Below the pieces are notes generated by a model. That model did not search any database and was not told the DNA's origin. It saw nothing but the letters and a program-made list of their open reading frames with translations. Of a stretch of 64,000 nt of DNA, positions 1 through 16,720 are shown one piece after another. This DNA comes from Epithemia pelagica (lineage: Eukaryota; Protista; Bacillariophyta): assembly GCA_946965045.2 (NCBI GenBank), contig OX337233.1:3286001-3350000 (forward strand), in the 5' to 3' direction. A program made the translations under genes and the position numbers. How positions within the stretch are numbered: position 1 is the first letter of the stretch; the number at the start of each line of letters is the position of its first letter.

Positions 1-1326
1 CAAAAACTGGGTTCCAGGCCTTCACTGATGCACAAGGAAAGTGCGTTGGACCAGATCATGGAGCGACTCATGCCCTTCTTTAAGGGCATGAATCACAGTG
101 GAACAGAGGCCTCCTACGTGAGAGTCTCTCAAATGCTAACGGCCTGTCAACAAGCCAAGCATTTTGTGGAGTTTTATACCATAAACCGATCAGACGGGGA
201 GTTTGAATTTGCAGAAAGATTGGTGGAGAGCAATTTGAATGACGGAGACAATGGTTATGAGGAAAAGGCCGATCCTGGAAAGCGCAATAAGAATACAACC
301 CGGCCAACAACACGAATGAACCGTGTTTTTGTCACAGAACTTCTGGTGTTAGCAAAGTGTCACGAGAAAAAACGTGAGAAGGGTGCTATGGTGGTTGACA
401 AGAATCACTTTTGGAGAGCACTTGATTCTACTACACTGGAAGTGCAGAAGAAGGTGCGTCGACAGGGTGATGGGAAGGTTAAAGCCGATGCTGTGGACGA
501 GTATGTCATGGTGAAAGTACAGGAAATGATGAGTACAGCAACACATGATCAACGACAGCCGTCCAAGCTCACCGCCTCAGACCCCATGGACGTTGATGAC
601 GAGTCTGAAATTGACATTGAAAAGGCCATAAAAGAGCAAGACGAAGAAGATAAGCCCGTTGATGATGGTACTCGCTTTTACAGTGACGACGAAACCGCAG
701 TTGTTGATGTTGAAGAAGAGGCCGAGTTTTATGGGAAACCTATGACAGACCAGTCGGATTTATACGAAAAGACTGACAAAGGAAGCCAAGAAATGAATGA
801 TTCCCATGAAGGACGAGATGAATATACACGTGAGGAAGCCGACATTCAGGAAACACAAGTCGAAGACATTGTGGCATCGGAGGGTTCTTATATTGCAGAC
901 GAAGCAGAAGACATTGAGACTCTTGACGATGAGGAGGAAGACGACATGAATAGTCAAGAGAACGAGTGACAATCCACGGAAAAGAAGGAGAGCGACACTG
1001 TTTCAGAACAAGGATTGCGAGAGAAAAAGAATGTCAAGGGGATGAAGGTCATTCCGCTCAATATAATGGCAGCAGACGATGTCATTTCGAAAGCATTGGA
1101 GAAAATGAGCGAGAAGAATGTCATTGCAGCCAAACAAAGGGATGCGGATCGCAAAGAGCGAGAGCACCATTTCCTACGTTACAGGCTGTTTGGAAGACTA
1201 GAGGAAATGGAAAAAGAAGGGACATCTTTAGGTTGGACTGACAGAGACGATGAAGATGTGAATGTTGGTGTTGAGTTGGATGACGGACTGGATGAGTATG
1301 AGTTTTATAAAGAATCGTTAATGTAA
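1..1326 (+). pseudogene. 3' part of a large gene running off the window start; DUF6589-like motif then a very acidic tail; interrupted by one in-frame TGA at 967-969
   Basis: Frame 1 is open from base 1. ORFs 28..969 and 1015..1326 share that frame and are separated only by TGA 967-969 (…ENE*QSTEKKESDTVSEQGLREKK…). SALDQIMERLMPFFKGMNHSGTEASYVRVSQML resembles the D-x2-ME-x-L/N-x3-K…T…R.S C-terminal pattern I recall for DUF6589 proteins (unverified). Confidence 0.5.
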
Positions 1327-1365
1327 ATAATGAACTTAGTAAGAACGTAAAGCAAGTGTAATAAT

Positions 1366-1790
1366 TTATTGACTACTGATATCAAAGAACTTGAACCCCT
1401 CCCAAGAACTCGCATGGTTCATACGGGGATTCCCATTGTCGTAATAACCCAATGATGCTCGTAGGTGGTGTCCATCTATCTCGGGAACAAGGATTTGCGA
1501 CGCGAAACACTTTAGAATGAGCGCTTTTGCTCTTGACCGAACGGTCCGGGCATTAGACGAGCGAAAAACCCTGATTCCAAATCGTTGCTCGCCATCTCCA
1601 TTGGGTTTAAAGGTCTCAAACTCCACTAGGGCTTTCAGAAAGCAATCTTTATGAAGTGACAAGGAAGATGGGGACAGCTTTCGGGTTATTAATACCATGA
1701 CGAGGTATTCTTGGAATGCTTCTTTATCAATGGGACTATCCAAGGGCGTATTGATTCGCGGCGTAGCACAACGCCAACATGCTCCACTGC
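1366..1790 (-). pseudogene. C-terminal segment of the RecQ-like helicase gene, separated from the rest by the retrotransposon
   Basis: After removing the element and one TSD copy, it continues in frame from LPTHCS (10111 side) into GACWRCATPRINTP…FFDISSQ*. Confidence 0.85.
1786..1790 (+). repeat. 5-bp target-site duplication ACTGC (left copy)
   Basis: ACTGC directly precedes the TG of the 5' LTR and recurs at 10111-10115. Confidence 0.95.
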
Positions 1791-2548
1791 TGTTAGGATT
1801 CTCACCGAAAACTAGGTGGCGAAACCTACAACTCATCGAATGATGCTAGTATTTTATGGCATCCGATGACATTTTCCTAAAAGTGAGAAAAGAATGTCGG
1901 CATGCTCGCGAAACTATAAATTTGGCCACAGCATGCTCGCAGTGCACGCGTTATCGGCGACCGCTCGGATATTAACTATGGCCTAACACGTGCGCGCCCA
2001 AAACTATCAAGTGCGCGCCTCTACTATCCGAGTACGCGCATCCACGATTCGACCTAACGGTCTATGTAATCAAAGCACGAATCACGATCACGCGAGACCA
2101 TATCTCTGTTCCCACAAATCCAAGAATGCAAACAGCAACGCGCCCAGGACAAGACTTATACCACGACAAAGCAAGAGCTGTTGCATCCCATACATGTTAT
2201 CCATCACCCTATACATTCAATATACACCAATGCCGGTCTACTCCAACCAGTGAGGACCTATCACACCAGATCCATGGCCGTATGCAAGAGCCAGGACTTC
2301 GGCACCGTCAACCACCTTAGTTAGTAATCGTCTCACAATCATTAATATCACCATTTTAACACTCATCTTAAGACTTACCTCTTATCAGTGGACCAACTGC
2401 CCCCACCCACGGCGGACTTCGACTTGCAACTCTTCTCTGACCCGTGGAGGATTGTTGTATCGGTTGGTGATTCGATTGTCGGCTCAGCGAGCCTTTTACC
2501 TATCCTAACTATCTGTCTAACCCCTGTTGAATCGAGAGAAGTTTATCA
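1791..2548 (+). repeat. 5' LTR (758 bp)
   Basis: TGTTAGGATT…GTTTATCA. No difference from 9353-10110 seen by eye, and the same shadow ORFs appear in both copies. Confidence 0.97.
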
Positions 2549-2565
2549 GATTAACAGTCTCATCG
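2549..2565 (+). promoter_or_regulatory. Putative primer-binding site complementary to a tRNA-Asn(GTT) anticodon arm (half-tRNA type)
   Basis: GATTAACAGTCTCATCG abuts the LTR. Its reverse complement CGA-TGAGA-CTGTTAA-TC contains a canonical Asn anticodon loop. No TGG-type PBS is present. Confidence 0.6.
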
Positions 2566-2586
2566 TTTATTTCCGAGAAGCTTTCG

Positions 2587-3342
2587 ATGTCTCACGACGA
2601 TTCCAACCTCTCTATTCGACACATCTTTCATTCCTTCCAACAAAGCGGGGAGGAACTCCATCCACCCGTGGCCCATCCGGGCGAGCCCTTGATTGAAACT
2701 CCGAAACCGACCCCGACTCAGGCCAGTGCTCCGAATCCCTTCCAGACCCCGGACCAAGTGGTCCAGCCTCCTTCGATCCCGACTCAACCTTCGACTCCGC
2801 CTCGCCGTTTGAACCCTACTCGCACCCGACGTACGAGCCGTCTTCTTACTGCGCATATCCGACACTTCCGCGAGCCGACTGAGTCGACTACCGACCCCGA
2901 CGTGATCCGTTCCACAACCGAACGCGAGATCGATTTCCAGTCCGTCCAACCCGTGACTGACCTTGAGGACATCCAACGACTTCTCGACCTCTTGAACCAG
3001 TGCTCGAGACGCCGTTTCATTGTCCAAGCCCTGTTGGGCAACCCTGTGGAACCCATCCGTATTCGATTCATCTCCTTTGAACGTCCAACCAACTACTTCC
3101 ACACCATCTGGATCGTCAACTCGACGACGAATCCGCTACCTACCCCGACTACTCGTCTCGACGAGTACGTCTCCTTTGTTCACGAGATCCATCTCTGCCA
3201 GGATTTCCGTGCGACTATCTACCCTCTCTTCACTCAACACGTGAACCACTTGTTGGAAGACGACGACGTTGAAGAACTAGCCACTACAGTGACCGATTCC
3301 GCATCTCGTCTTCAGTACCGAGCCGAAAGTGACCAAGAATAA
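2587..3342 (+). CDS. Extra ORF (251 aa) inside the retrotransposon, upstream of gag; Pro-rich N-half and a globular-looking C-half; function unknown
   Basis: ATG at 2587 just after the PBS, open to TAA at 3342 (MSHDDSNLSIRH…RAESDQE). Confidence 0.65.
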   Translation: MSHDDSNLSIRHIFHSFQQSGEELHPPVAHPGEPLIETPKPTPTQASAPNPFQTPDQVVQPPSIPTQPSTPPRRLNPTRTRRTSRLLTAHIRHFREPTESTTDPDVIRSTTEREIDFQSVQPVTDLEDIQRLLDLLNQCSRRRFIVQALLGNPVEPIRIRFISFERPTNYFHTIWIVNSTTNPLPTPTTRLDEYVSFVHEIHLCQDFRATIYPLFTQHVNHLLEDDDVEELATTVTDSASRLQYRAESDQE

Positions 3343-3676
3343 GTAACTTTACGTAGTTTCTACACCAAACCAGACACAAGACCGAGTTCCGTCCAAGACT
3401 TAAACTCAACGCACATCCGGGTACCCTTGGTCGCACAACACGCCACACATTCCCGTCAAATCGCGAAAATTCGGCGAAAATTTGTTGAAACTCGGCGAAA
3501 TTTTGTCGGAATCAACGGAAATTTCCAGGAGTCGCACATCACAACACACATCCGGGTATCACATACGTGGTACATACGTGGCACACGTGGTACATCCGGG
3601 TTCACATCACATCACACATTAAATAAACCACATCACACCGCACATTAAATAAACATCGAACCAACCAAATAACATC

Positions 3677-6600
3677 ATGGAAGCGACACCTCCCAAGACA
3701 CCGTTTACTCCTCCTGAGGACAAGTCAAGTCATATAACCGACCAAGATCTCTTCGACCATATAACTAAAGGCATCTTTGGTTGTAATGATGAACGAGCCC
3801 AATCACTTCAAAAGTGGATGCGACATCATGGTTTTGAACATATCCTTCATGTCCTCGACCATGTTGCAACTGATCCTGAGGAGACACTCAAGGATCTCAT
3901 GCAATACAAGGTTGGAAAGCAAGTCAACGACCTACAGACAAGTACAAGATTACAACTCAAACTAATGGCATATTGGTTACTACAACAACGGCAACTCCAA
4001 CATGGAAAACTACCCCGTGCTACATGGATGAACCTCACGAGGGACCAATATGACGATTGGAGGATCAACACCGACTTTACCAAGTCTGGTATGAACCAAG
4101 ACCCAGTTTCTCCTCTGAAATCACCTGCACACTCCGTATCATCCCGATCTCCCACTACATCCTCTACAACATCCCAATCCATGTTAGATCTCTCTGCTTT
4201 CAAGAAAGGAACCAAAAGAGATGCAACAGCATTTGAATCATTCAAAGACGAACGATACTTTGATTCGTTTTGGCGTGTATTCAAATCAACTGCGAAAGCA
4301 CAAGGATTGTCGAATGTTCTTGATTTCAATTACAAGGTACCCAAGGATGACGAATGCGCAGAGTTACTTTTCCGAGAACAACAAGTCTTTGTCTATTCTG
4401 TACTTGTACGTATTATCCAAACCGACCAAGGAAGAGCATACGTTCGAGAACATGAACATGATGAAGATGCAAGAGCCGTCTTGAAGAAACTCCATGTTCT
4501 ACACACCGAATCTGATCTAGCTAAGCGAGAAGTGTTACGCCTAACAAGCTACATTTCGAATCTTCGACTGGATGACTCTTGGCGTGGTACAACTCGTCAG
4601 TTTCTCCTACATTTCCAAGAACAGCTACGACTTCTGGATAACCTTGTACCACTGTCGGATCGTATCCATGACCATACAAGGATGACCTTCCTTATGCAAG
4701 CTGTTGAAAAAGTACCTGATTTAAGACGAGTCAAGATCTTGGATAACGTTGTCAACACAAAATCTGGAGCCAAGTCTCTCTGTTATCAATCATATTTCCG
4801 CCTGCTTCTTGATGCTGCTTTTGACCATGACCAAGCTACCCGAACTTCTGCGTCTAACCGTCGTCGTCATGTAAAGCAACATGAATTTCAGTTGGATGAA
4901 CCTTTTGAACCAGTGGAGCCCCCTGACTACCAGATCAACAACACGAATATCCAATCTGAAAAGTCCCCAACTTCGTCGAAAATCAGCCTTCCAAGAGATG
5001 TATGGTTTAAACTCTCTGAAGAGGATCGGCAAATCATTGTCGACTTCAATAAATCCGTCCAAGATTCCCCGACAACTCCACGCAAGGTCCAAAGACATTC
5101 TCTTGACATTGATCCTGAACCGGACCCTGATCCTGATGCCAACAACGTTGGTGATATCCATCAAGATGCACCAGAACAAGATCCATTCGATACATCCTCT
5201 GATCCGGTTACCCAGTTCGTACACCAGGCTATTGCATCGACAGATATCAATCATCCAGCATCTGACCTCAGCAACATCTTGTCAACTTCTACGACAAAGT
5301 CAAGTCCTAAAGCCAAGTTCAAGTCTTCTGCCGATCACAAGCAAAAGGTTCATATGTCACGGTATCTATTCTCCCGCAAATCCACCTTTTCTGGTAACCA
5401 ACTCATCGATCGAGGTGCCAATGGAGGCCTTGCAGGATCTGACATGCGCATCCTTGCCAAAACCGGACGTCATATTACCATCGTAGGTTTTGACAATCAT
5501 GAATTGACTGGCCTTCCAGTTGTTACCTGTGCTGCCAAGTTTGATACAAGTGATGGACCCATTATTGGTATCTTCAATGAGTATGCCCACTATGGAAAGG
5601 GTTTATCTATCCATGCCCCAGCGCAATTTGAACATTTCGGCCTATCTGTCGACGAACGATCCGTCAAGGTTGATGGCAAACAACGCATTACTACCCTTGA
5701 TGGACGTGCATTGCCCTTACGAATCAAGGATGGCCTTGCATACATTCAATCTCTGGGAATCCCTTCTGATGACGATATGGATAGATATCCGCATATTGTG
5801 TTCACTTCACCCCATATCTGGGATCCTTCTGTACTTGACCATACCCATCCAGACCCCCATCAAGACCCTGCACCGAACTGGACATCTGTGGAGACTGATG
5901 GTAGTATGGAGACGTACCCCTATGACCAATATGGGGAGTATACCGATCGCATTGTATGCACTTTGAATCTCCTCCTTGATCTCCCATATGATCATGGCCC
6001 CGATACACCTTCCTTCTTTTCCATCTATGCTGATCAAGATGGCAACGACCCCACACTTCATGCGTCTGTCCACAAGCTCTACAAGGAACAATACGACTGG
6101 AAGAAATTTCGCCCTTTCTTTGGGTGGCAATCGGAAGATGTAATCGCAGATACGTTCAAGCATACAACTCGTCATGGACACATTTCCTTTGACCAGGATA
6201 CCTTGAAGAAACATTTTAAGGCCCGGAATCCTATCCTTAACCTACCACGACGGCATGAACCCGTTGCCACTGACTCCATCTTCTCCGACACCCCGGCTGT
6301 TAACCATGGTGGCAAGATTGCTCAGATTTTTGTTGGTCGTGATACTTTGGTTACTGACATTTATGGTATCAAGTCTACCAAGCAATTCGTCAATACCTTC
6401 CAGGATAACATTCGTACACGTGGTGTCATGGAGACTTTGATCAGTGATGGTGGTTCGTCACTTATTTCCCACAAGGTCAAGGATATTCTTCGCACCCTTC
6501 TGATTGGTGAATACCGTTCCGAGCCCTATCATCAACACCAGAACAAAGCTGAGAACCGCTACCAGACCGTTAAGCGTATGACCAACGCTATCATGAATGC

Positions 6601-9358
6601 CTCTGGTTGCCCTGCTTCTGTATGGTTACTTTGTTTAGAATATGTGTGTGACCTCCTCAATCACACTTCCTCTCCCACCCACTCTGGCCGCACCCCTCTT
6701 GAGGCTCTTACCGGTACCCCACCCGACATTACCCATCTCCTTTTCTTTCCTTTCTGGGATGAGGTCTACTATCGTGTCGACCCTTCTGAACCTACCTCCG
6801 GTTCTTACCCTTCGTCTCCCGACGAGAAGCTTGGCCACTGGGTTGGTTTTGCCCACAATGTTGGTGATGCCTTTACTTGGAAGATCCTCACTGCCGACAA
6901 CGTCATCATCTACCGTTCCGCTGTCCGTCGCGTTGCCTCCACTACCCCCAACCTTCGTGTGGATATCTCTTCAGGGGAGGAGTCGCCACATAAACCCACT
7001 GACAAGCAAGGTGACACTGTCTTTATTCGCAGCAGAAGTGAAGACCCATCCACACCTATGCCAACAATTGACTATGACGATTTAGTTGGACGCACATTCC
7101 TTTGTGACACTGAAGAGAATGGGGAGCGCCACCGAGCACGAGTAATCAAACGAGTTGTCGACCTGGAACAAGATGCAACCAAACAAGAAGATCGACTCAA
7201 ATACATCTTTCGCAAGTCTAACTCCAATGTTGATGAGATGATCTCCTACAACCAGCTCATGGAATACATTGAAAGGGATAATCAAGCCCAAACGACAGGG
7301 GATAGTCTCTTCCGATTCAGAGACGTTATTGCACACCAAGGACCTTTGAACTCAAGCGACCCAGACTATAAAGGGAGTAAATATAATGTCCTTGTTGATT
7401 GGGAGACTGGGGAGACGACATACGAACCTCTATCTCTTATTGCAAATGATGACCCCATCACAGTCGCCATCTATGCCAAGAAAAATGGTTTGCTGGATCT
7501 ACCTGGATGGAAACATCTCAAGCGATACGTCAAGACAAGCAAAAGACTCATTCGAGCAGCTAAACAATCCAGGATCAAACAAGTTCGTCGCTCTATCAAG
7601 TACAAGTTTGGTTTCCAAGTACCTCGCACCTATGAAGAAGCAGTGGAACTAGACAAGCAGTTTGGGAACACGAAATGGCAAGACGCAACAGAATTGGAAC
7701 TCTCACAGATCCAATCGTATAACACTTTCAAGAACCATGGAAAAGCCAAGTTCATTAATGGGAAATTGGCCAATGCACCAGAAGGATATCATAAGATAAG
7801 AGTACATCTGGTCTTTGATGTCAAGCATGACGGAAGGCACAAGGCACGACTTGTCGCAGATGGACATCTCACCAAGGAACCCGTTGAGACCATCTATTCA
7901 GGGGTTGTCTCCATTCGCAACCTTCGCATTGCCATATTTCTTGGAACCATGAACGACATGGAAATATGGGGAGCAGATATTGGGAACGCATACCTAGAAG
8001 CATTGACAGGAGAGAAGATTTTCATCATTGCAGGACCAGAGTTCAAGGAGTTAGAAGGACATATCTTGATCATCTACAAGGCATTATATGGTCTCAAATC
8101 CTCAGGTGCTCGCTGGCATGACAAACTGTTTGATGTTCTCATTGATATGGGATTTTCTCCAAGCAAGGCTGACCCTGATATTTGGATGAAGAAAGCTCCT
8201 GGAGAAGACTGTTATGAATATATCGCTGTATATGTTGATGACTTAGCTATCGTTGCCATGGACCCTGAAGCTGTCTGCAAGATCTTTACAGAAAAATACA
8301 ACTTCAAACTCAAAGGAGTCGGACCTATCGAGTATCATTTGGGGTGTCGTTATACCAAAGATCCAGACGGTACACTTGTGTCTGACCCACGAAGGTACAT
8401 CGAGAAGATGATGGATACCTATGAACGATTGTTCAATGAGAAACCCAAGAAAGCAAAGCCGCCAGTCATTGCTAACGATCATCCTGAACTCGATGACTCT
8501 GAGCTCTTAGATGAAGAAGGGACCCAGCATTTCCAGACTCTTATTGGACAACTGCAATGGCTAATTACCATTGGCCGTTTTGATGTCTTTCCTGCTACCA
8601 TGACTCTATCAAGGTTCAGAGCTGCTCCAAGGATTGGTCATTTGAAGCGAGCTAAGCGCATCTATGGATACCTCATGTCATTTCCTGATGGGTCTATCAG
8701 ATTCCGCACTGGGGAGCCAGATTTATCAGCTTTACCTATCCAAGAATACGATTGGAGTCGTACTGTATACATGGACGCCAAGGAACGTATCCCTGAGGAC
8801 TGTCCAACCCCACTTGGGCGTTTTGTGACAACTATACATTATGTCGACGCAAATCTCATGCATGATATTGTTACTGGGAAAGCAGTCACAGCCATCCTGC
8901 ATTTTGTAAATGGTACACCCGTGGACTGGTACAGTAAGCGACAAGCCACAGTGGAAACAGCCACGTATGGATCTGAATTTGTTGCCGCAAGGACTGCAGT
9001 TGATCAGATCACGGAGCTACGCCTTACACTCCGATACTTGGGAGTCCCTCTGCGAGAGAAGAGTTACATGTTTGGAGATAACCGCTCTGTCGTTATCAAT
9101 AGCACCACACCACACTCAATCATCTCCAAGAGGCACCATCTCCTATCCTATCACCGAGTCCGTGAAGCTATCGCTGCAAAGTACGTCGCATTCTACTGGA
9201 AAGATGGAAAGACAAACCCAGCTGATATCCTCAGTAAACATTGGGAATTTGCCGCAGTTTGGCCCATGCTCAGATCTTTGTTATTCTGGAGAGGAAAAAT
9301 CCAGGAAAGTGATGAGGGAATTGACAATCCTCATTCGACGAATTGTGGGGAGTGTTAG
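3677..9358 (+). CDS. Gag-Pol polyprotein (1893 aa): gag, aspartic protease, integrase, chromodomain-like segment, reverse transcriptase, RNase H
   Basis: Protease IDRGANGG. Integrase ATDSIFSD / LISDGG / QNKAENRY (DDE). RT ALYGLKSSG and YVDD. RNase H YVDA / TYGSEF / FGDN / ADILSK. The stop falls in the first bases of the 3' LTR. Confidence 0.97.
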   Translation: MEATPPKTPFTPPEDKSSHITDQDLFDHITKGIFGCNDERAQSLQKWMRHHGFEHILHVLDHVATDPEETLKDLMQYKVGKQVNDLQTSTRLQLKLMAYWLLQQRQLQHGKLPRATWMNLTRDQYDDWRINTDFTKSGMNQDPVSPLKSPAHSVSSRSPTTSSTTSQSMLDLSAFKKGTKRDATAFESFKDERYFDSFWRVFKSTAKAQGLSNVLDFNYKVPKDDECAELLFREQQVFVYSVLVRIIQTDQGRAYVREHEHDEDARAVLKKLHVLHTESDLAKREVLRLTSYISNLRLDDSWRGTTRQFLLHFQEQLRLLDNLVPLSDRIHDHTRMTFLMQAVEKVPDLRRVKILDNVVNTKSGAKSLCYQSYFRLLLDAAFDHDQATRTSASNRRRHVKQHEFQLDEPFEPVEPPDYQINNTNIQSEKSPTSSKISLPRDVWFKLSEEDRQIIVDFNKSVQDSPTTPRKVQRHSLDIDPEPDPDPDANNVGDIHQDAPEQDPFDTSSDPVTQFVHQAIASTDINHPASDLSNILSTSTTKSSPKAKFKSSADHKQKVHMSRYLFSRKSTFSGNQLIDRGANGGLAGSDMRILAKTGRHITIVGFDNHELTGLPVVTCAAKFDTSDGPIIGIFNEYAHYGKGLSIHAPAQFEHFGLSVDERSVKVDGKQRITTLDGRALPLRIKDGLAYIQSLGIPSDDDMDRYPHIVFTSPHIWDPSVLDHTHPDPHQDPAPNWTSVETDGSMETYPYDQYGEYTDRIVCTLNLLLDLPYDHGPDTPSFFSIYADQDGNDPTLHASVHKLYKEQYDWKKFRPFFGWQSEDVIADTFKHTTRHGHISFDQDTLKKHFKARNPILNLPRRHEPVATDSIFSDTPAVNHGGKIAQIFVGRDTLVTDIYGIKSTKQFVNTFQDNIRTRGVMETLISDGGSSLISHKVKDILRTLLIGEYRSEPYHQHQNKAENRYQTVKRMTNAIMNASGCPASVWLLCLEYVCDLLNHTSSPTHSGRTPLEALTGTPPDITHLLFFPFWDEVYYRVDPSEPTSGSYPSSPDEKLGHWVGFAHNVGDAFTWKILTADNVIIYRSAVRRVASTTPNLRVDISSGEESPHKPTDKQGDTVFIRSRSEDPSTPMPTIDYDDLVGRTFLCDTEENGERHRARVIKRVVDLEQDATKQEDRLKYIFRKSNSNVDEMISYNQLMEYIERDNQAQTTGDSLFRFRDVIAHQGPLNSSDPDYKGSKYNVLVDWETGETTYEPLSLIANDDPITVAIYAKKNGLLDLPGWKHLKRYVKTSKRLIRAAKQSRIKQVRRSIKYKFGFQVPRTYEEAVELDKQFGNTKWQDATELELSQIQSYNTFKNHGKAKFINGKLANAPEGYHKIRVHLVFDVKHDGRHKARLVADGHLTKEPVETIYSGVVSIRNLRIAIFLGTMNDMEIWGADIGNAYLEALTGEKIFIIAGPEFKELEGHILIIYKALYGLKSSGARWHDKLFDVLIDMGFSPSKADPDIWMKKAPGEDCYEYIAVYVDDLAIVAMDPEAVCKIFTEKYNFKLKGVGPIEYHLGCRYTKDPDGTLVSDPRRYIEKMMDTYERLFNEKPKKAKPPVIANDHPELDDSELLDEEGTQHFQTLIGQLQWLITIGRFDVFPATMTLSRFRAAPRIGHLKRAKRIYGYLMSFPDGSIRFRTGEPDLSALPIQEYDWSRTVYMDAKERIPEDCPTPLGRFVTTIHYVDANLMHDIVTGKAVTAILHFVNGTPVDWYSKRQATVETATYGSEFVAARTAVDQITELRLTLRYLGVPLREKSYMFGDNRSVVINSTTPHSIISKRHHLLSYHRVREAIAAKYVAFYWKDGKTNPADILSKHWEFAAVWPMLRSLLFWRGKIQESDEGIDNPHSTNCGEC
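9347..9352 (+). promoter_or_regulatory. Polypurine tract (GGGGAG)
   Basis: Purine run immediately 5' of the 3' LTR TG. Confidence 0.75.
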
Positions 9359-10110
9359 GATTCTCACCGAAAACTAGGTGGCGAAACCTACAACTCATCG
9401 AATGATGCTAGTATTTTATGGCATCCGATGACATTTTCCTAAAAGTGAGAAAAGAATGTCGGCATGCTCGCGAAACTATAAATTTGGCCACAGCATGCTC
9501 GCAGTGCACGCGTTATCGGCGACCGCTCGGATATTAACTATGGCCTAACACGTGCGCGCCCAAAACTATCAAGTGCGCGCCTCTACTATCCGAGTACGCG
9601 CATCCACGATTCGACCTAACGGTCTATGTAATCAAAGCACGAATCACGATCACGCGAGACCATATCTCTGTTCCCACAAATCCAAGAATGCAAACAGCAA
9701 CGCGCCCAGGACAAGACTTATACCACGACAAAGCAAGAGCTGTTGCATCCCATACATGTTATCCATCACCCTATACATTCAATATACACCAATGCCGGTC
9801 TACTCCAACCAGTGAGGACCTATCACACCAGATCCATGGCCGTATGCAAGAGCCAGGACTTCGGCACCGTCAACCACCTTAGTTAGTAATCGTCTCACAA
9901 TCATTAATATCACCATTTTAACACTCATCTTAAGACTTACCTCTTATCAGTGGACCAACTGCCCCCACCCACGGCGGACTTCGACTTGCAACTCTTCTCT
10001 GACCCGTGGAGGATTGTTGTATCGGTTGGTGATTCGATTGTCGGCTCAGCGAGCCTTTTACCTATCCTAACTATCTGTCTAACCCCTGTTGAATCGAGAG
10101 AAGTTTATCA
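9353..10110 (+). repeat. 3' LTR (758 bp)
   Basis: Direct repeat of 1791-2548, followed by the TSD ACTGC. Confidence 0.97.
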
Positions 10111-10115
10111 ACTGC
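10111..10115 (+). repeat. 5-bp target-site duplication ACTGC (right copy)
   Basis: Matches 1786-1790. Confidence 0.95.
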
Positions 10116-11877
10116 AATGAGTGGGCAAATCAATGACACGTTTCTGATTGGGATGAACCATCATTGATTCCAAGCTGAAATGAATGCACTGTCCCTTGTC
10201 TAGACAGACGAGGTCAAGTACACGCAAGACATTGTGCCATTGACGACGGGCGAGGTCATCGGGAGACAATGTAAGTGAGGCAGAAGGTTTGGAGGTTTGG
10301 GTTCCATTTTCTGCATTGGACTGTCCATCATCGTTACTTTGGTTGGATTTGGCCCGCTCATACTTAGGTATGATGAAAATTCTCGTCATCAATGCAACAA
10401 GGCTATTGAGGGAGACAATCATACAAAAGGAAGAGTTGGAAGGGTTTGCTTTGTCATGACGTCCACAACGTCCGGAACACTGAAGCAAGTCTTCAATACT
10501 CTGTGGGAAGCCCTGAAATAAAACTCTATCTACTTCTGGACAATCCACACCGGAGCTCGATGTCCCAGCCGTAGCGAAGTAGGCAAGGGGGTCAAAGCGA
10601 AGGGGCCGCCGGTTGGTCGGGCATTCATCAAGCAACGGTTGTCCAACAAAAATATCCGTGTGATGGAATTTTTGTTCACGGAACATTTCGCCGTGGACTA
10701 GAAGGATATCTTTTTGACTCCCAACGTTGTTCAGTATGGCTCGGCTTTTGGCATACAAGCTCATAAGAGCCTTCCTCGAGTTGGAGTAAACCATTATTTT
10801 CCGTCCTCCGGGGGCCCGAGATGTCTTGAGGAGATCTCGCTTGATACGACGAAGAGGTTGCTCACTGAATGTAAGGTCGAGGAAGAGGTTACGTCGTTCG
10901 ACGCCTGAATGATTTGCGGGCCAGATAAGATCTTGGGTGGGATTGAAAGACAACCCAGTCAACGTCGTCAAATCATCCACCATGGATTGGGAGGCGGTTG
11001 CTGTCATGAACAAAATAGGAATGGGTGCGGTCAATTGTTTTTCCATCAAGTGGAAGAGACATTTGCGAAGTTCTCCAAACTCCCGGCGAAACTCCATTCC
11101 ATGACTTGCGTAGAGGTGGCACTCGTCGATAGCAACAGAGCGCAAAGTGCCATTGCGACAACAAATGGATATGGTTTGTTGCCAGAGTGGGTCTCGTGTG
11201 AGTTTCTGCGGTGATGTGAACAGAAATACTCTTTTCTTCGAGGTCTTGTTGTTGGGTAACGCCTCAAGATGGCTCCGAAGAAGGTCATTCAGGTTCTTCG
11301 ACCGAATGACATCCAGATTGTAGACATGGAGGCGATTCGACAGCCTTCGAGACAACGATAGCTCCGTCAACTTGGAGGTTTGATCGGCGGCCAAACTCAA
11401 AAGGGGAACGATTGTGATCGTGATTGGACCACAAAGTATTCCGGAAACGTCTCTCACGGCAGATTTTCCACCACCAGTTGAACGAACAAGAAGAATAGGA
11501 CGTAGAAGGGAAGGGGGGTTGCGGCTCAATTGGCGTTGAAGTACTTCTTTACATGCATGGACTTGCCATGACCGGGCCGTCTTTCCATGCCAGCCTCTGA
11601 ATACGGAGTTGACGGCGCCTTCGAGGGAAGGACGCCCATGGGATTCATTATTAGTAGAAAGATGGATGACCGGAGGCGTTCGGTTGGATGGAAAAGGATT
11701 ATCTTGGCCTCTTGCAGCATGGTCATCTGTCTTGTTGTTGTTGCAGTCGGAGAGCCTTGTATTTAGAGTGTCTTGCTCCAATGAGGAGAGGCTTTGGAGA
11801 GCCCGCGCTTTCGTAGAACCGTCGTGGGTAGTATTGGTGAGAGCCTTGTGGTCGGGGTTGGAGGTGCGGGTAGCCAT
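10111..11877 (-). pseudogene. RecQ-like SF2 (DEAH-box) helicase, N-terminal and core part, disrupted by the LTR insertion
   Basis: Motifs STGGGKS (I), IVPLLSLAADQ (Ia), AIDECH (II), MTATA (III), SSGVDCPEV (V), QCSGRCGR (VI), then a Cys cluster. Intronless. Likely ATG 11877 (MATRTSNP); the ORF is open to 12036. Confidence 0.88.
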
Positions 11878-12002
11878 GATGGATGTAATCGTCCTCACTA
11901 GTTTGCCTCCGTGGTGGCTCTGTGGAGGTGAAATGCAGTTTGTATCAGAGTCGAGAAATTGGCGATTTGGGGCCCTCGAGCCGTGGGGGTGACTAAGGGA
12001 AT

Positions 12003-12044
12003 GCACTTGAAAAGTGCGACTGACCAGTCGCCCCATGCTTGGGG
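12003..12044. other. Three abutting short inverted repeats (hairpin cluster)
   Basis: GCACTT/AAGTGC (12003-12017), GCGACTG/CAGTCGC (12016-12031), CCCCA/TGGGG (12031-12044). Confidence 0.7.
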
Positions 12045-12137
12045 GTAAAAAAGGAAGTCCCCAACTCGAATAGTTGTTCCCTTTCCATCAGGCCACAACA
12101 ACAGCAACGCATTCTGATCCAGGGAATCCAGAACGCC

Positions 12138-13994
12138 ATGGCCAATAACCAGGTGTGGGTAAGATGGAAGGACTCTTCTGATGACTGGTTATTTGATACT
12201 GTCACGGATCTGAAAGATGATGCGCAAATCACGGACCTGCGTAAAGCGTTTGTGAGGCAACAATACCTTCAAGGTCAGCTTTCACCTGCAGAGGTACAAG
12301 TTCGCGAAACAACCGTCCATGGTGAGGACCGTCTCAAGGCGAGCAGCCCATTGGTGACCTATTTTGTGCCTCCCACAGGTTGTGTTCCGGAGCCCGGAAA
12401 AAGCGAGGACACTGCTTTGTTTCTGACCGTTCCGCGGATTGCTGCAAGAGGTACCAAACAACAAGAACAAACGAACCAACGATATTTGGTCCTTAGTGTC
12501 TCCGAGGTAGCAAAGGATCCCAAGCTCCGTACCGAATTTCGAGACAAGCAGGTGGCGGAGGATTCTTGTCGGGGCGGCTTTATTGCCCAAAAGTTTTATC
12601 TGGAGTTTGTCCTGGCCGCTCGAGAGTTTGAAACGTTTGAAAGAAAAGACAGCGTCGTCGAGGAAGTGGCCAAGCTTGGACAAGTCCTTGCTGTCGGCTC
12701 CACAAAGAAACACTCCTTGTTCCACAATTCATACCCTGATGAAGAAGAAGTCTCGCATTCAGCGGTAGGGTCGGAGCTGTTTCGACTGGCAATCGACTTG
12801 CTGCAGCAAGACCGGGATGCCAAGGACCCGATGCGCTTGAGAGTAACGCATCAGCAGCATCTTGTGACCAACATTGAAAGTCCAGACAGTGCTCCCCAAG
12901 AGTTCGAAATCATTCGCAAGAGAAAGAGGGAAACCGGAGAACTTGAATCGAAACCAGTGGAAGATGAGAAATCTCTGGATCCAATCGACATGTGCGCATG
13001 GTTTGTCCATCCAGAACGAACACTTGGGGCGTGTGTCTTGGCGGCATGTCAATACAAGCCCAGCGGTATCCCAGAGACGGAACGGAAAGCGCAAGCGGAC
13101 ATGTACGGGAGCAACATTCTGATTCTACACCAGAAACCATGTATTGTCATTGACATTGCCGGGGCAAACGATCTTGACGATTGGAACGTGTCGGCGTATG
13201 GTCTCATCCAGGCTCAATTCACCAAACAATCACATTTGTGGGAAACGTCGCCTCTCTACGTTGGCCGCGGTGCGGAAGCGATCGTGATGGTGGCTCGCGG
13301 TCTTTTAGCGGCACAAGAAAGCTTTCCTTCGAGACTGGAACAATATGGCAGTCGCCTTGGCCCGGTGGTTGGTAAGATTGACGAGTTTGTCTACAAGGTC
13401 TACGACATGGCCCAACATCGAAAGCCGAATATCGATGCTGTGCAGACGCTATTTGATGACAATGCAGAGCTTTTGTCATCCAAAGACGATAAACTTGAGA
13501 TTGTGAAAATGAAGTGGATTCCAAGTAACTGGAAGAAAGATGTGAATACGGATGTTTTTCAGGAAATCATTCGAAAACTACGACTTCTTCACGAGAATTT
13601 TGGACCCCATGGTGATATTCGCCTTGCGAATCTGCTCAGCTGTGGGAGTATCATCGACTTTGATTTTGTTCGGGCTGAAAGGTATCCTTCAACATTGAAT
13701 TCGATATCTCAGGATGGAAGGAGACATCCAGACGTTGAGGACATGATCCATCGTATCGAAGAAAATGGTGACGAGTCAGCACTGATTCAGCCTGAGAAGA
13801 TTCACGACTGGTTCTCGCTAGGGCAGGTCATGCGGCTTTTCCATCCTACCGATGAATCGAACGCGTCGTCATGGGAGTCATTCTGCAAACAGGTTGAGGG
13901 AGGATTGAACACCGTGCCTGTCATGCCTTTTTTCACAGTAATGCTCAAAGATCGCGACATGCCTCTAGCGGGGCAGCGGAGCGAGAGCGAATGA
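12138..13994 (+). CDS. Crinkler (CR)-like protein, copy 1: ubiquitin-like header + putative restriction-endonuclease-fold domain + atypical kinase
   Basis: N-terminal VWVRW…DLRKAFV…EDTALFLTVP resembles CRN Ubl headers ending in HVLVxxP. Central DPIDM…ACQYKP is a possible PD-(D/E)xK variant. Kinase motifs VYKVYD, HGDIRLAN, IIDFDF. ATG at 12138 (MANNQ). Confidence 0.7.
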   Translation: MANNQVWVRWKDSSDDWLFDTVTDLKDDAQITDLRKAFVRQQYLQGQLSPAEVQVRETTVHGEDRLKASSPLVTYFVPPTGCVPEPGKSEDTALFLTVPRIAARGTKQQEQTNQRYLVLSVSEVAKDPKLRTEFRDKQVAEDSCRGGFIAQKFYLEFVLAAREFETFERKDSVVEEVAKLGQVLAVGSTKKHSLFHNSYPDEEEVSHSAVGSELFRLAIDLLQQDRDAKDPMRLRVTHQQHLVTNIESPDSAPQEFEIIRKRKRETGELESKPVEDEKSLDPIDMCAWFVHPERTLGACVLAACQYKPSGIPETERKAQADMYGSNILILHQKPCIVIDIAGANDLDDWNVSAYGLIQAQFTKQSHLWETSPLYVGRGAEAIVMVARGLLAAQESFPSRLEQYGSRLGPVVGKIDEFVYKVYDMAQHRKPNIDAVQTLFDDNAELLSSKDDKLEIVKMKWIPSNWKKDVNTDVFQEIIRKLRLLHENFGPHGDIRLANLLSCGSIIDFDFVRAERYPSTLNSISQDGRRHPDVEDMIHRIEENGDESALIQPEKIHDWFSLGQVMRLFHPTDESNASSWESFCKQVEGGLNTVPVMPFFTVMLKDRDMPLAGQRSESE

Positions 13995-15049: not shown

Positions 15050-16201
15050 GCGACAAACCGGATTGCCCATGACTACGACACCCTGTATGATCTCTTCCTT
15101 TTTGGAATGCACGACTGTGGGTTCCTGGCATCCCTGCCCCAGCTACCAATCCACGGACGACTACTTTGTGTCCTGCAAAGTGCCATGATGCCACCACAAA
15201 CCCCCAGATTCTTGTCTCACGACCGCACAACCACTGTGGTGGCACTTCCACTTGTAGAGACACAAAAATTTGGTCGTTCCTACCAAGTCTTTGACAGCAA
15301 ACAAAAGCTCTTTCTACTTTTGAGTAACCAGTAACGAGGTCCTAGGATTGGAATTGTACGTAGAAAACATGTCAACGACTTGAAAACAAAACGTCTAGGC
15401 TTCATCGTTCCCTTAATCACCGCGATGCGTATTCGGCATTGCTCGTTTTTAAGCTGATGTCGAGGTAGAGAAGAGTGAACGATCAGCATGTTGGATGCCC
15501 ATTCCATCCAGAGACTGATACCATCCGCCGGGCTGCTGCTCACAGAGTCGACGAAAACACCATGTATACCAGTCTCAGCGTGCTGCGTAATCCAGATACT
15601 CCACCGAGTCAACATAACCATGCTCGTTAAGGCCTCCAACGACAAAGATGCGGTGGCCAACGACTGCACTGGCACAAAATGATCGACAAAGGTTCATGCT
15701 TGGTCCCGCAGTGACAGTGTGGTTCCTGGTATCAATGATATCAATCGACGACAAAAAGATCGTTGTAGCCACCCAGTACAACGATTTATCGGTTGATAAC
15801 CGCTACAGCACGACGTGCTCTTCGCCCCGTTGATAAGCGACAATTCAATGTCACCCAATGGATCTTCTGTGAATTTGAAGTCGAAGATGATTACAGCAAA
15901 TCATTGGCATCAATCCGCTCCATGCAATTCAAACATGAACCTTCACTGCATCCTGTATCCTCCCACCACGTAAATGCCTCCATTGCACTCAACAGCGGCA
16001 AGTTCGTCACGTTTCTTGTTCATGGGTGGACTTTCTCGCCCCTGCTTGTTTGGGTCTGATAAATTCAATGCAAGAATGGAATCGAGCTCGCCTTGAGCTG
16101 TGTGATATCACACGCAACACGACGACAGTTTGTCTCTTGTTGTTGTTGTCGTTGTCCTTTACGGGATGATCGAGTACGACCGTAGAAAGATCGCGACGCA
16201 T
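15050..16201 (-). pseudogene. Kelch-repeat pseudogene, paralogue of 39130-40497
   Basis: Colinear fragments in several frames with stops: MNKKRDELAAVECNGGIYVVGG; MERIDANDLL*…HWVTLNCRLST; CASAVVGHRIFVVGGLNEHGYVDSVEYLD. Ends are approximate. Confidence 0.8.
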
Positions 16202-16720
16202 CCACCCTGAAGAGGAGGTCAGTTGTTTTCATTCCATTCTGGTGTCGCGTTCAAAAGGACAAGGCCCGACTCCTATGCTGATTCTTGCTCATGGTGTGCT
16301 GGCGTTCGATGTCTGACGTACAGACGGAAATTCGAATCTACCTACCTAGGTAATTCGTGACTCGATTTCACCCTAGCTAGCTAGCTATAGAGTACTCCTA
16401 CGAACCACACCAAAAAGGAAAACATATCCATAACCTGAGGAGTGTTGTATTGCTCACATGTGGTCAATGGGGAATGGGGCGACGGTAAAACCTTGCTCAC
16501 GGACTCAGGAGCCAAAGGTATCAAAGGTCTCTACTAAAAATACAGAGTAGGAGTACAATAGATTGCGATTGCCAAAGATACAACCAGATAGCAACAGTAA
16601 TCGACCCGCATCTGTTCGAAAAGATCCACGGTTGATTGACAGACGGCCTGACAACTGACAGCGTCGATTCTTTCCGGCAAAAATGCAGCTACAAGTGAAT
16701 AGACCATACACAAACGCAAA

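Follow-up and report, generated by a model that had tools for sequence, protein, structure and literature searches.

At the left edge of a 64,000-nucleotide stretch of the genome of the diatom Epithemia pelagica (assembly GCA_946965045.2, contig OX337233.1, positions 3,286,001 to 3,350,000; hereafter the window), two convergent, intronless genes lie within what is very probably one copy of an AcademH-type DNA transposon. Coordinates below are window positions unless prefixed (G000:C for genome contigs, L for fetched stretches). The left gene encodes a DUF6589-type transposase and the right gene a RecQ-like superfamily 2 (SF2) helicase, which is split by a Ty1/copia long terminal repeat (LTR) retrotransposon (Table 1). 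When the retrotransposon and one copy of its target-site duplication are removed, 12036..10116 joins 1790..1366 in frame on the minus strand to give 781 codons, and the stop codons of the two genes are 39 bp apart. Much of this had been proposed in an earlier annotation made from the letters alone (the sequence-only reading), which described an intronless minus-strand RecQ-like gene ending at 1366, about 40 bp from a left-gene stop at 1326, a DUF6589-like left gene with the motif LDQIMERLMPFFKGMNHSGTEASYVRVS and an acidic tail, a helicase with the divergent motif VI QCSGRCGR and without HRDC-type organization, a hairpin cluster just upstream of the helicase, and damage to both genes. Each of these points was upheld: the motifs and the tail are present, the full left gene exceeds the Pfam cut-off for DUF6589, Pfam finds neither an RQC nor an HRDC domain in the helicase, the hairpins correspond to the right terminal repeat and a subterminal palindrome of ~65 nt (~11968-12047), and both reading frames are broken, one by copia and the other by a TAA codon.

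Table 1. Features of the transposon and of the retrotransposon nested in it
Feature	Position	Strand	Basis or partner
Transposase open reading frame (DUF6589-type), C-terminal part, aa 1294-1615	1-966	+	
Premature in-frame TAA in the transposase acidic tail	967-969	+	
Remaining 118 transposase codons and native stop (1324-1326)	970-1326	+	
C-terminal part of the RecQ-like helicase, codon 641 to stop (1366-1368)	1366-1790	-	Frame continuity; region conserved in distant relative
Target-site duplication of copia, ACTGC (5 bp)	left 1786-1790, right 10111-10115		
Nested Ty1/copia LTR retrotransposon	1791-10110	+	Open reading frame listing, repeat search, domain scan
RecQ-like SF2 helicase, N-terminal 640 codons, with motifs I (TGGGKS), II (DECH), and VI (QCSGRCGR)	10116-12036	-	
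Right subterminal palindrome with small hairpins	11968-12030	.	DNA folding
Right 17-bp perfect terminal inverted repeat, TACCCCCAAGCATGGGG read inwards	12031-12047	-	Partner G000:C6:3281976-3281992 (L014:3976-3992)
10-bp target-site duplication of the transposon, AAAAAGGAAG	right 12048-12057; left L014:3966-3975		

The transposase open reading frame (ORF) begins outside the window at G000:C6:3282122 (L014:4122), ~3.9 kb to the left, and the upstream DNA was fetched to complete it. The gene spans ~1735 codons in full, with a 1615-codon ORF up to the in-frame TAA. Intact copies elsewhere in the genome have ORFs of 1711 to 1754 aa, and the 118 codons that follow the TAA still align to the last 105 residues (aa 1627-1731) of an intact 1732-aa transposase at L036 (51% identity, E 6e-32); for these two reasons we regard the stop as premature. 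Our searches used the 1615-aa piece up to this stop and, separately, the tail (as a 103-codon ORF and as its 118 codons). Pfam DUF6589 (PF20231) was the only match for the transposase at E up to 1, covering aa 1002-1280 with 33.9 bits against a cut-off of 27 (E 1.9e-8). A word-index protein search found only 13 close relatives (55 to 66% identity), all unnamed ENA entries, and a large profile search yielded 696 representatives at E up to 1e-3, 303 of them at E up to 1e-10.

The relatives from the profile search were needed to obtain a confident structural model of the DUF6589 region. AlphaFold (AF2) run with eight close copies gave a predicted local distance difference test score (pLDDT) of 40, compared with 92.1 (predicted template modeling score, 0.92) for residues 780-1350 modeled from 61 diverse sequences. 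The first half of the modeled topology comprises beta-1 (which holds D816), beta-2, an insertion, beta-3, and alpha-1; the second half comprises beta-4 with D1059 directly after it, beta-5, a large all-alpha insertion domain, and a final helix carrying D1310-x3-E1314, a motif that lies within the window at ~49-63. In an exhaustive structure search with VIA-align, the top ranks went to the transposases of Hermes (Z 9.3 over 295 aligned residues) and of the P element (Z 9.2 over 291), followed by ~20 retroviral integrase cores (Z 6.3 to 7.6) and then Tn5, ISCth4, Sleeping Beauty, and RAG1. Hermes, a hAT transposase, and the P element share with the model an RNase H-like core that is interrupted by a large all-alpha insertion before the catalytic E; they differ from the present element in their 8-bp duplications and lack of a helicase, and neither has detectable sequence similarity to this transposase. 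In the model, the DUF6589 core adopts an RNase H-like DDE fold; its identification as the DDE core of a transposase is well supported. D816, D1059, and E1314 are conserved across the 61 relatives down to 21% identity, as are the DNxQ(K/R)G motif at D816, E1014, GDGLS, and GxLH. Judged by position in the secondary structure, the catalytic triad would be D816, in strand beta-1; D1059, immediately following beta-4; and E1314, in the helix beyond the all-alpha insertion domain.

The helicase was searched as its two separate pieces, the joined frame having been translated only to check continuity. All matches to PDB sequences belong to the RecQ family (RECQL1, BLM, E. coli RecQ, WRN, and RECQL5; E ~4e-10), and motifs I, II (DECH), and VI are recognizable in the core that these proteins match best. 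However, the best NCBIfam model, recQ_fam (TIGR00614), scored 70 to 72 bits against a cut-off of 219.8, the Pfam scan detected DEAD and Helicase_C and no RQC or HRDC domain, and, in further distinction from canonical RecQ proteins, the gene is present in at least 25 genomic copies and lies inside a transposon. On these grounds the protein is best classed as RecQ-like and not as a canonical RecQ orthologue. The encoded helicase is ~700 to 780 aa long. In this copy the ATG at 12036 falls within the terminal repeat, and translation probably starts elsewhere.

The element termini were located by comparison with a second copy on the same contig (G000:C6:187494-190553), which is 98.8 to 99.7% identical to this element over two outer parts only, window 12046..11104 and a stretch outside the window, 4,024 to 1,905 bp to the left of its first position. 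That second copy is an internal-deletion derivative; its deletion junction carries a 4-bp microhomology (ACTT), and it is flanked by a 9-bp duplication. Homology between the two copies breaks off exactly at the terminal repeats on both sides, and because it stops so abruptly there, we fixed the termini as TACCCCCAAGCATGGGG ... CCCCATGCTTGGGGGTA. The sequence-only reading had placed the right end at 12044, 3 bp short of the true end at 12047. From G000:C6:3281976 to this point, the element comprises 7,747 bp of its own sequence, or 16,072 bp including copia, and the window contains its right-hand three quarters (1-12047). Both ends carry a palindrome of ~65 nt (GGGGTGAG ... CTCACCCC) with small inner hairpins. 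The fold z-score is -1.7 at the right end of this copy, and three further ends gave values of -3.3 to -4.4. The repeat search, at its thresholds, reported no short inverted repeats at the element ends; DNA folding did reveal them. Its helicase split by copia at codon 641 and its transposase cut short in the acidic tail, this copy is dead.

Related copies are widespread in the genome, whose diatom origin is borne out by at least 11 full-length silicon-transporter genes. We detected at least 25 near-full-length helicase loci (53 to 61% identity) and at least 22 transposase loci (51 to 61% identity), nearly always adjacent to each other and convergent. When as many as 2 of its 17 nt may differ, the terminal repeat TACCCCCAAGCATGGGG has 138 matches in the 60.5-Mb genome, versus 7 for the reversed control, and many of these matches are arranged as inverted pairs. 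Target duplications abut TA...TA termini in 16 of 20 fetched elements, which range from 112 bp to 8.5 kb: 12 are perfect 10-bp duplications, three are 9 bp long, and one is 10 bp with a mismatch. The remaining four comprise two that represent the same insertion within an inverted segmental duplication and two whose fetched stretch does not include a second end. Two non-autonomous copies of 2,538 bp, 99.05% identical, lie on different contigs with different duplications, and a 118-bp miniature element is built from the two ends of the present copy. This copy appears to be the sole coding-length member of its terminal-repeat subfamily, the others with the exact repeat being derivatives of 118 bp to 8.5 kb. 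In pairwise comparison, transposase and helicase divergence between subfamilies run in parallel, a correlation driven largely by one close pair. Since many divergent subfamilies retain intact genes and non-autonomous copies have moved recently, the family is probably still active in this genome. The identical intact 7,809-bp elements L036 and L037 (G000:C4:2025227-2033035 and C4:3401457-3409265) have mutually reverse-complementary flanks; both lie in one large segmental duplication, inverted, on contig 4, and do not represent separate insertions.

The same pair of genes was found far outside this genome. A JGI metagenome contig (Ga0214477_100477; L051) whose neighboring genes are eukaryotic (nucleoporin, chitin synthase, and cyclic nucleotide monophosphate [cNMP]-dependent kinase) encodes a 1401-aa transposase homologue (22% identity over ~1,000 aa, E 4e-48) and, 20 bp away and convergent with it, an 806-aa helicase homologue (24% identity over ~600 aa, E 2e-31). 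The L051 helicase and the diatom transposon helicases are much closer to each other than either is to cellular RecQs, which argues that the transposase and helicase were inherited together. On L051 these genes belong to a complete 7,363-bp element (L051:9549-16911) with 25-bp perfect terminal repeats, CACACTGTAGTACTTCGGTTATGTA, located between a gene of unknown function and the cNMP-dependent protein kinase gene. The DUF6589 cut-off is also exceeded by two distant relatives, P0019 and P0130, the latter a single protein in which DUF6589 and helicase domains are fused. In the ESM Atlas, the clusters nearest to the transposase core consist of DUF6589 proteins from Cnidaria, Basidiomycota, Mollusca, and Mucoromycota.

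Taken with the published descriptions, these features led us to interpret the element as one copy of an AcademH-type cut-and-paste transposon, with a probability of roughly 85%. The type was reportedly described by Kojima in 2020 in Mobile DNA (11:15), a description known here through the papers that cite it. According to those papers, AcademH elements generate 9- or 10-bp target duplications and encode a helicase (PMC10045372), and DEAD/Helicase_C helicases of this lineage occur in Basidiomycota, Ascomycota, and Mucoromycota (PMC10799480); AcademX elements generate 3- to 4-bp duplications and encode a nuclease (PMC10045372). Academ transposons are abundant in Pucciniomycotina (PMC5751038, which also reports them from Puccinia) and in bivalves (PMC10294476). 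The present element combines an RNase H-like DDE core (by predicted fold), a separate SF2 helicase of the DEAD/Helicase_C, RecQ-like kind, terminal inverted repeats, 9- to 10-bp duplications, and a length of several kilobases, all of them shared with AcademH as described. It differs from that description in its host, a stramenopile rather than an animal or fungus, and in the many divergent subfamilies and abundant miniature and deleted derivatives in this genome. Because its features match a type already described from animals and fungi, we regard it as a new host record and not as a new kind of element; helicase-encoding Academ transposons would thereby extend to diatoms. Our literature search found no paper pairing Academ with diatoms in a transposon context.

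The sequence-only reading had taken the locus to be the right part of a decaying, helicase-carrying DNA element in a diatom, and the ends, the duplication, the family copies, and the disruption of both genes agree with it. It had also suggested looking for an RNase H-fold DDE core in the left gene, for recurrence of the two genes as a linked pair, for sharp boundaries with terminal inverted repeats and target-site duplications, and for a helicase outside the canonical RECQL, BLM, and WRN group. The AF2 model, the adjacent convergent pairs at 25 or more loci, the terminal repeats with their 9- to 10-bp duplications, and a recQ_fam score of 70 bits against 219.8 answered these in turn, each in favor of that reading. 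Its description of the element as uncharacterized did not survive, the architecture and duplication length being those published for AcademH (PMC10045372, PMC10799480).

Kolobok was considered as another helicase-bearing candidate. KolobokH and Kolobok-1_CCri are DDE transposons with a RecQ-like helicase, encoded on the complementary strand in Kolobok-1_CCri, and Kolobok is present in diatoms (PMC9587614). However, Kolobok duplications are 4 bp long and specific to TTAA, and the termini read 5'-RR...YY-3' (PMC9587614), whereas the duplications of the present family are 9 to 10 bp, varied, and without TTAA, and its termini are TA...TA. This candidate was rejected because neither the length and sequence of the duplications nor the termini fit. 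A Helitron reading was considered and rejected as well.

Several observations weigh against the AcademH assignment. Its grounds are architecture, duplication length, and host range rather than sequence comparison with reference Academ transposases. The duplication of the L051 element is 8 bp (ACTTACTC) and not 9 to 10 bp. Foldseek returned no significant match for the transposase model in the PDB, and profile searches of PDB sequences with alignments A2 and A3 gave chance or low-complexity matches only. The triad was assigned from position in the predicted fold and not by residue-level superposition, and a role of the helicase in transposition is something that we only infer.

The first of these points also favors the strongest alternative, a separate, unnamed DDE superfamily in which the DUF6589 transposase is unrelated to Academ and the RecQ-like helicase and the 9- to 10-bp duplications were acquired independently. 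Kolobok lineages captured RecQ-like helicases independently (PMC9587614), so more than one superfamily can carry a helicase; in 2017 no Pfam family was stated to match the RNase H domain of Academ (PMC5751038), and no paper linking DUF6589 to Academ was found in our literature search. The 2017 statement, however, predates DUF6589 and for that reason does not exclude a link between the two. Moreover, all of the published AcademH hallmarks open to testing are present here, and the phyla in which DUF6589 look-alikes occur match the range reported for Academ and AcademH (PMC10799480, PMC10294476, PMC5751038). We consider an independent superfamily improbable.

Far less probable still is a Mutator-like element (MuDR/MULE) that acquired a helicase. 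The duplication length fits this proposal, since MULEs also make 9- to 10-bp target duplications, and the fold of the transposase is nearest to those of Hermes and the P element. Against it, the Pfam search at E up to 1 returned DUF6589 and no MULE, DBD_Tnp_Mut, or SWIM match, and the helicase is co-conserved with the transposase down to 22 to 24% identity, which marks it as a partner of ancestral standing rather than one captured recently. Finally, a non-mobile host gene pair, in which a lineage-expanded RecQ paralogue sits beside a DUF6589 gene, might account for the divergence of the copies (51 to 61% amino acid identity) and for the many long intact ORFs among them, but is refuted by the terminal repeats, the 9- to 10-bp duplications, the miniature and deleted derivatives, and the near-identical copies at unrelated loci.

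Under the AcademH interpretation, the transposase would bind the terminal repeat and the inverted GGGGTGAG repeats within the subterminal palindromes, cut at the TA termini, and integrate the element with a stagger of 9 to 10 bp. The helicase would be an accessory factor, probably one that unwinds or remodels the palindromic ends or that aids repair synthesis, either at the donor site or at the target. Copies with internal deletions would arise by interrupted gap repair after excision; the deletion junction carries the 4-bp microhomology noted above. In a broader and much more speculative version, which we think unlikely, the DUF6589 transposase and the RecQ-like helicase would form an ancient, obligatorily two-gene machine across eukaryotes (diatoms, fungi, cnidarians, and molluscs), with the helicase mechanistically required. 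If this were true, the helicase could open the conserved palindromic ends into the substrate cut by the transposase, and the diatom clade could stand apart, as its own lineage, from the Academ groups published so far.

For annotation, the well-supported prediction for the DUF6589 core would give this domain of "unknown function" a role in transposition, and should stop such genes and their neighboring RecQ-like paralogues from being annotated as host genes in diatoms, fungi, and animals. As compact, sharply bounded elements with terminal inverted repeats, 10-bp duplications, and a miniature form of 118 bp, members of the family also offer test material for the function of a transposon-encoded RecQ-like helicase.

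The retrotransposon in helicase codon 641 has all the features of Ty1/copia: LTRs with TG...CA ends, a 5-bp duplication, and an rve/integrase match that precedes RVT_2, as is usual for copia. The two LTRs, at 1791-2548 and 9353-10110, have the same length of 758 bp and are 100% identical, and the element retains an intact 1893-aa gag-pol ORF (3677-9358, plus strand). Given the identical LTRs and the intact ORF, the insertion is evidently very recent, and the element looks potentially active. Copia-like ORFs are also contained in a non-autonomous copy of the same terminal-repeat subfamily at L032 (G000:C7:865495-874015; 10-bp duplication AGGAAAGTGG), which makes it a second instance of copia inside a member of this family.

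To the right of the transposon, a long open frame on the plus strand (12141-13994, 651 aa as listed, without a Pfam match) has its first ATG ~85 bp beyond the right duplication, so that the transposon occupies the region upstream of what is probably a host gene. Further along, 15149-16286 is ~75% identical to three segments around the internally deleted copy (G000:C6:179362-180805, 184695-186155, and 192209-193682) and represents another dispersed repeat family.

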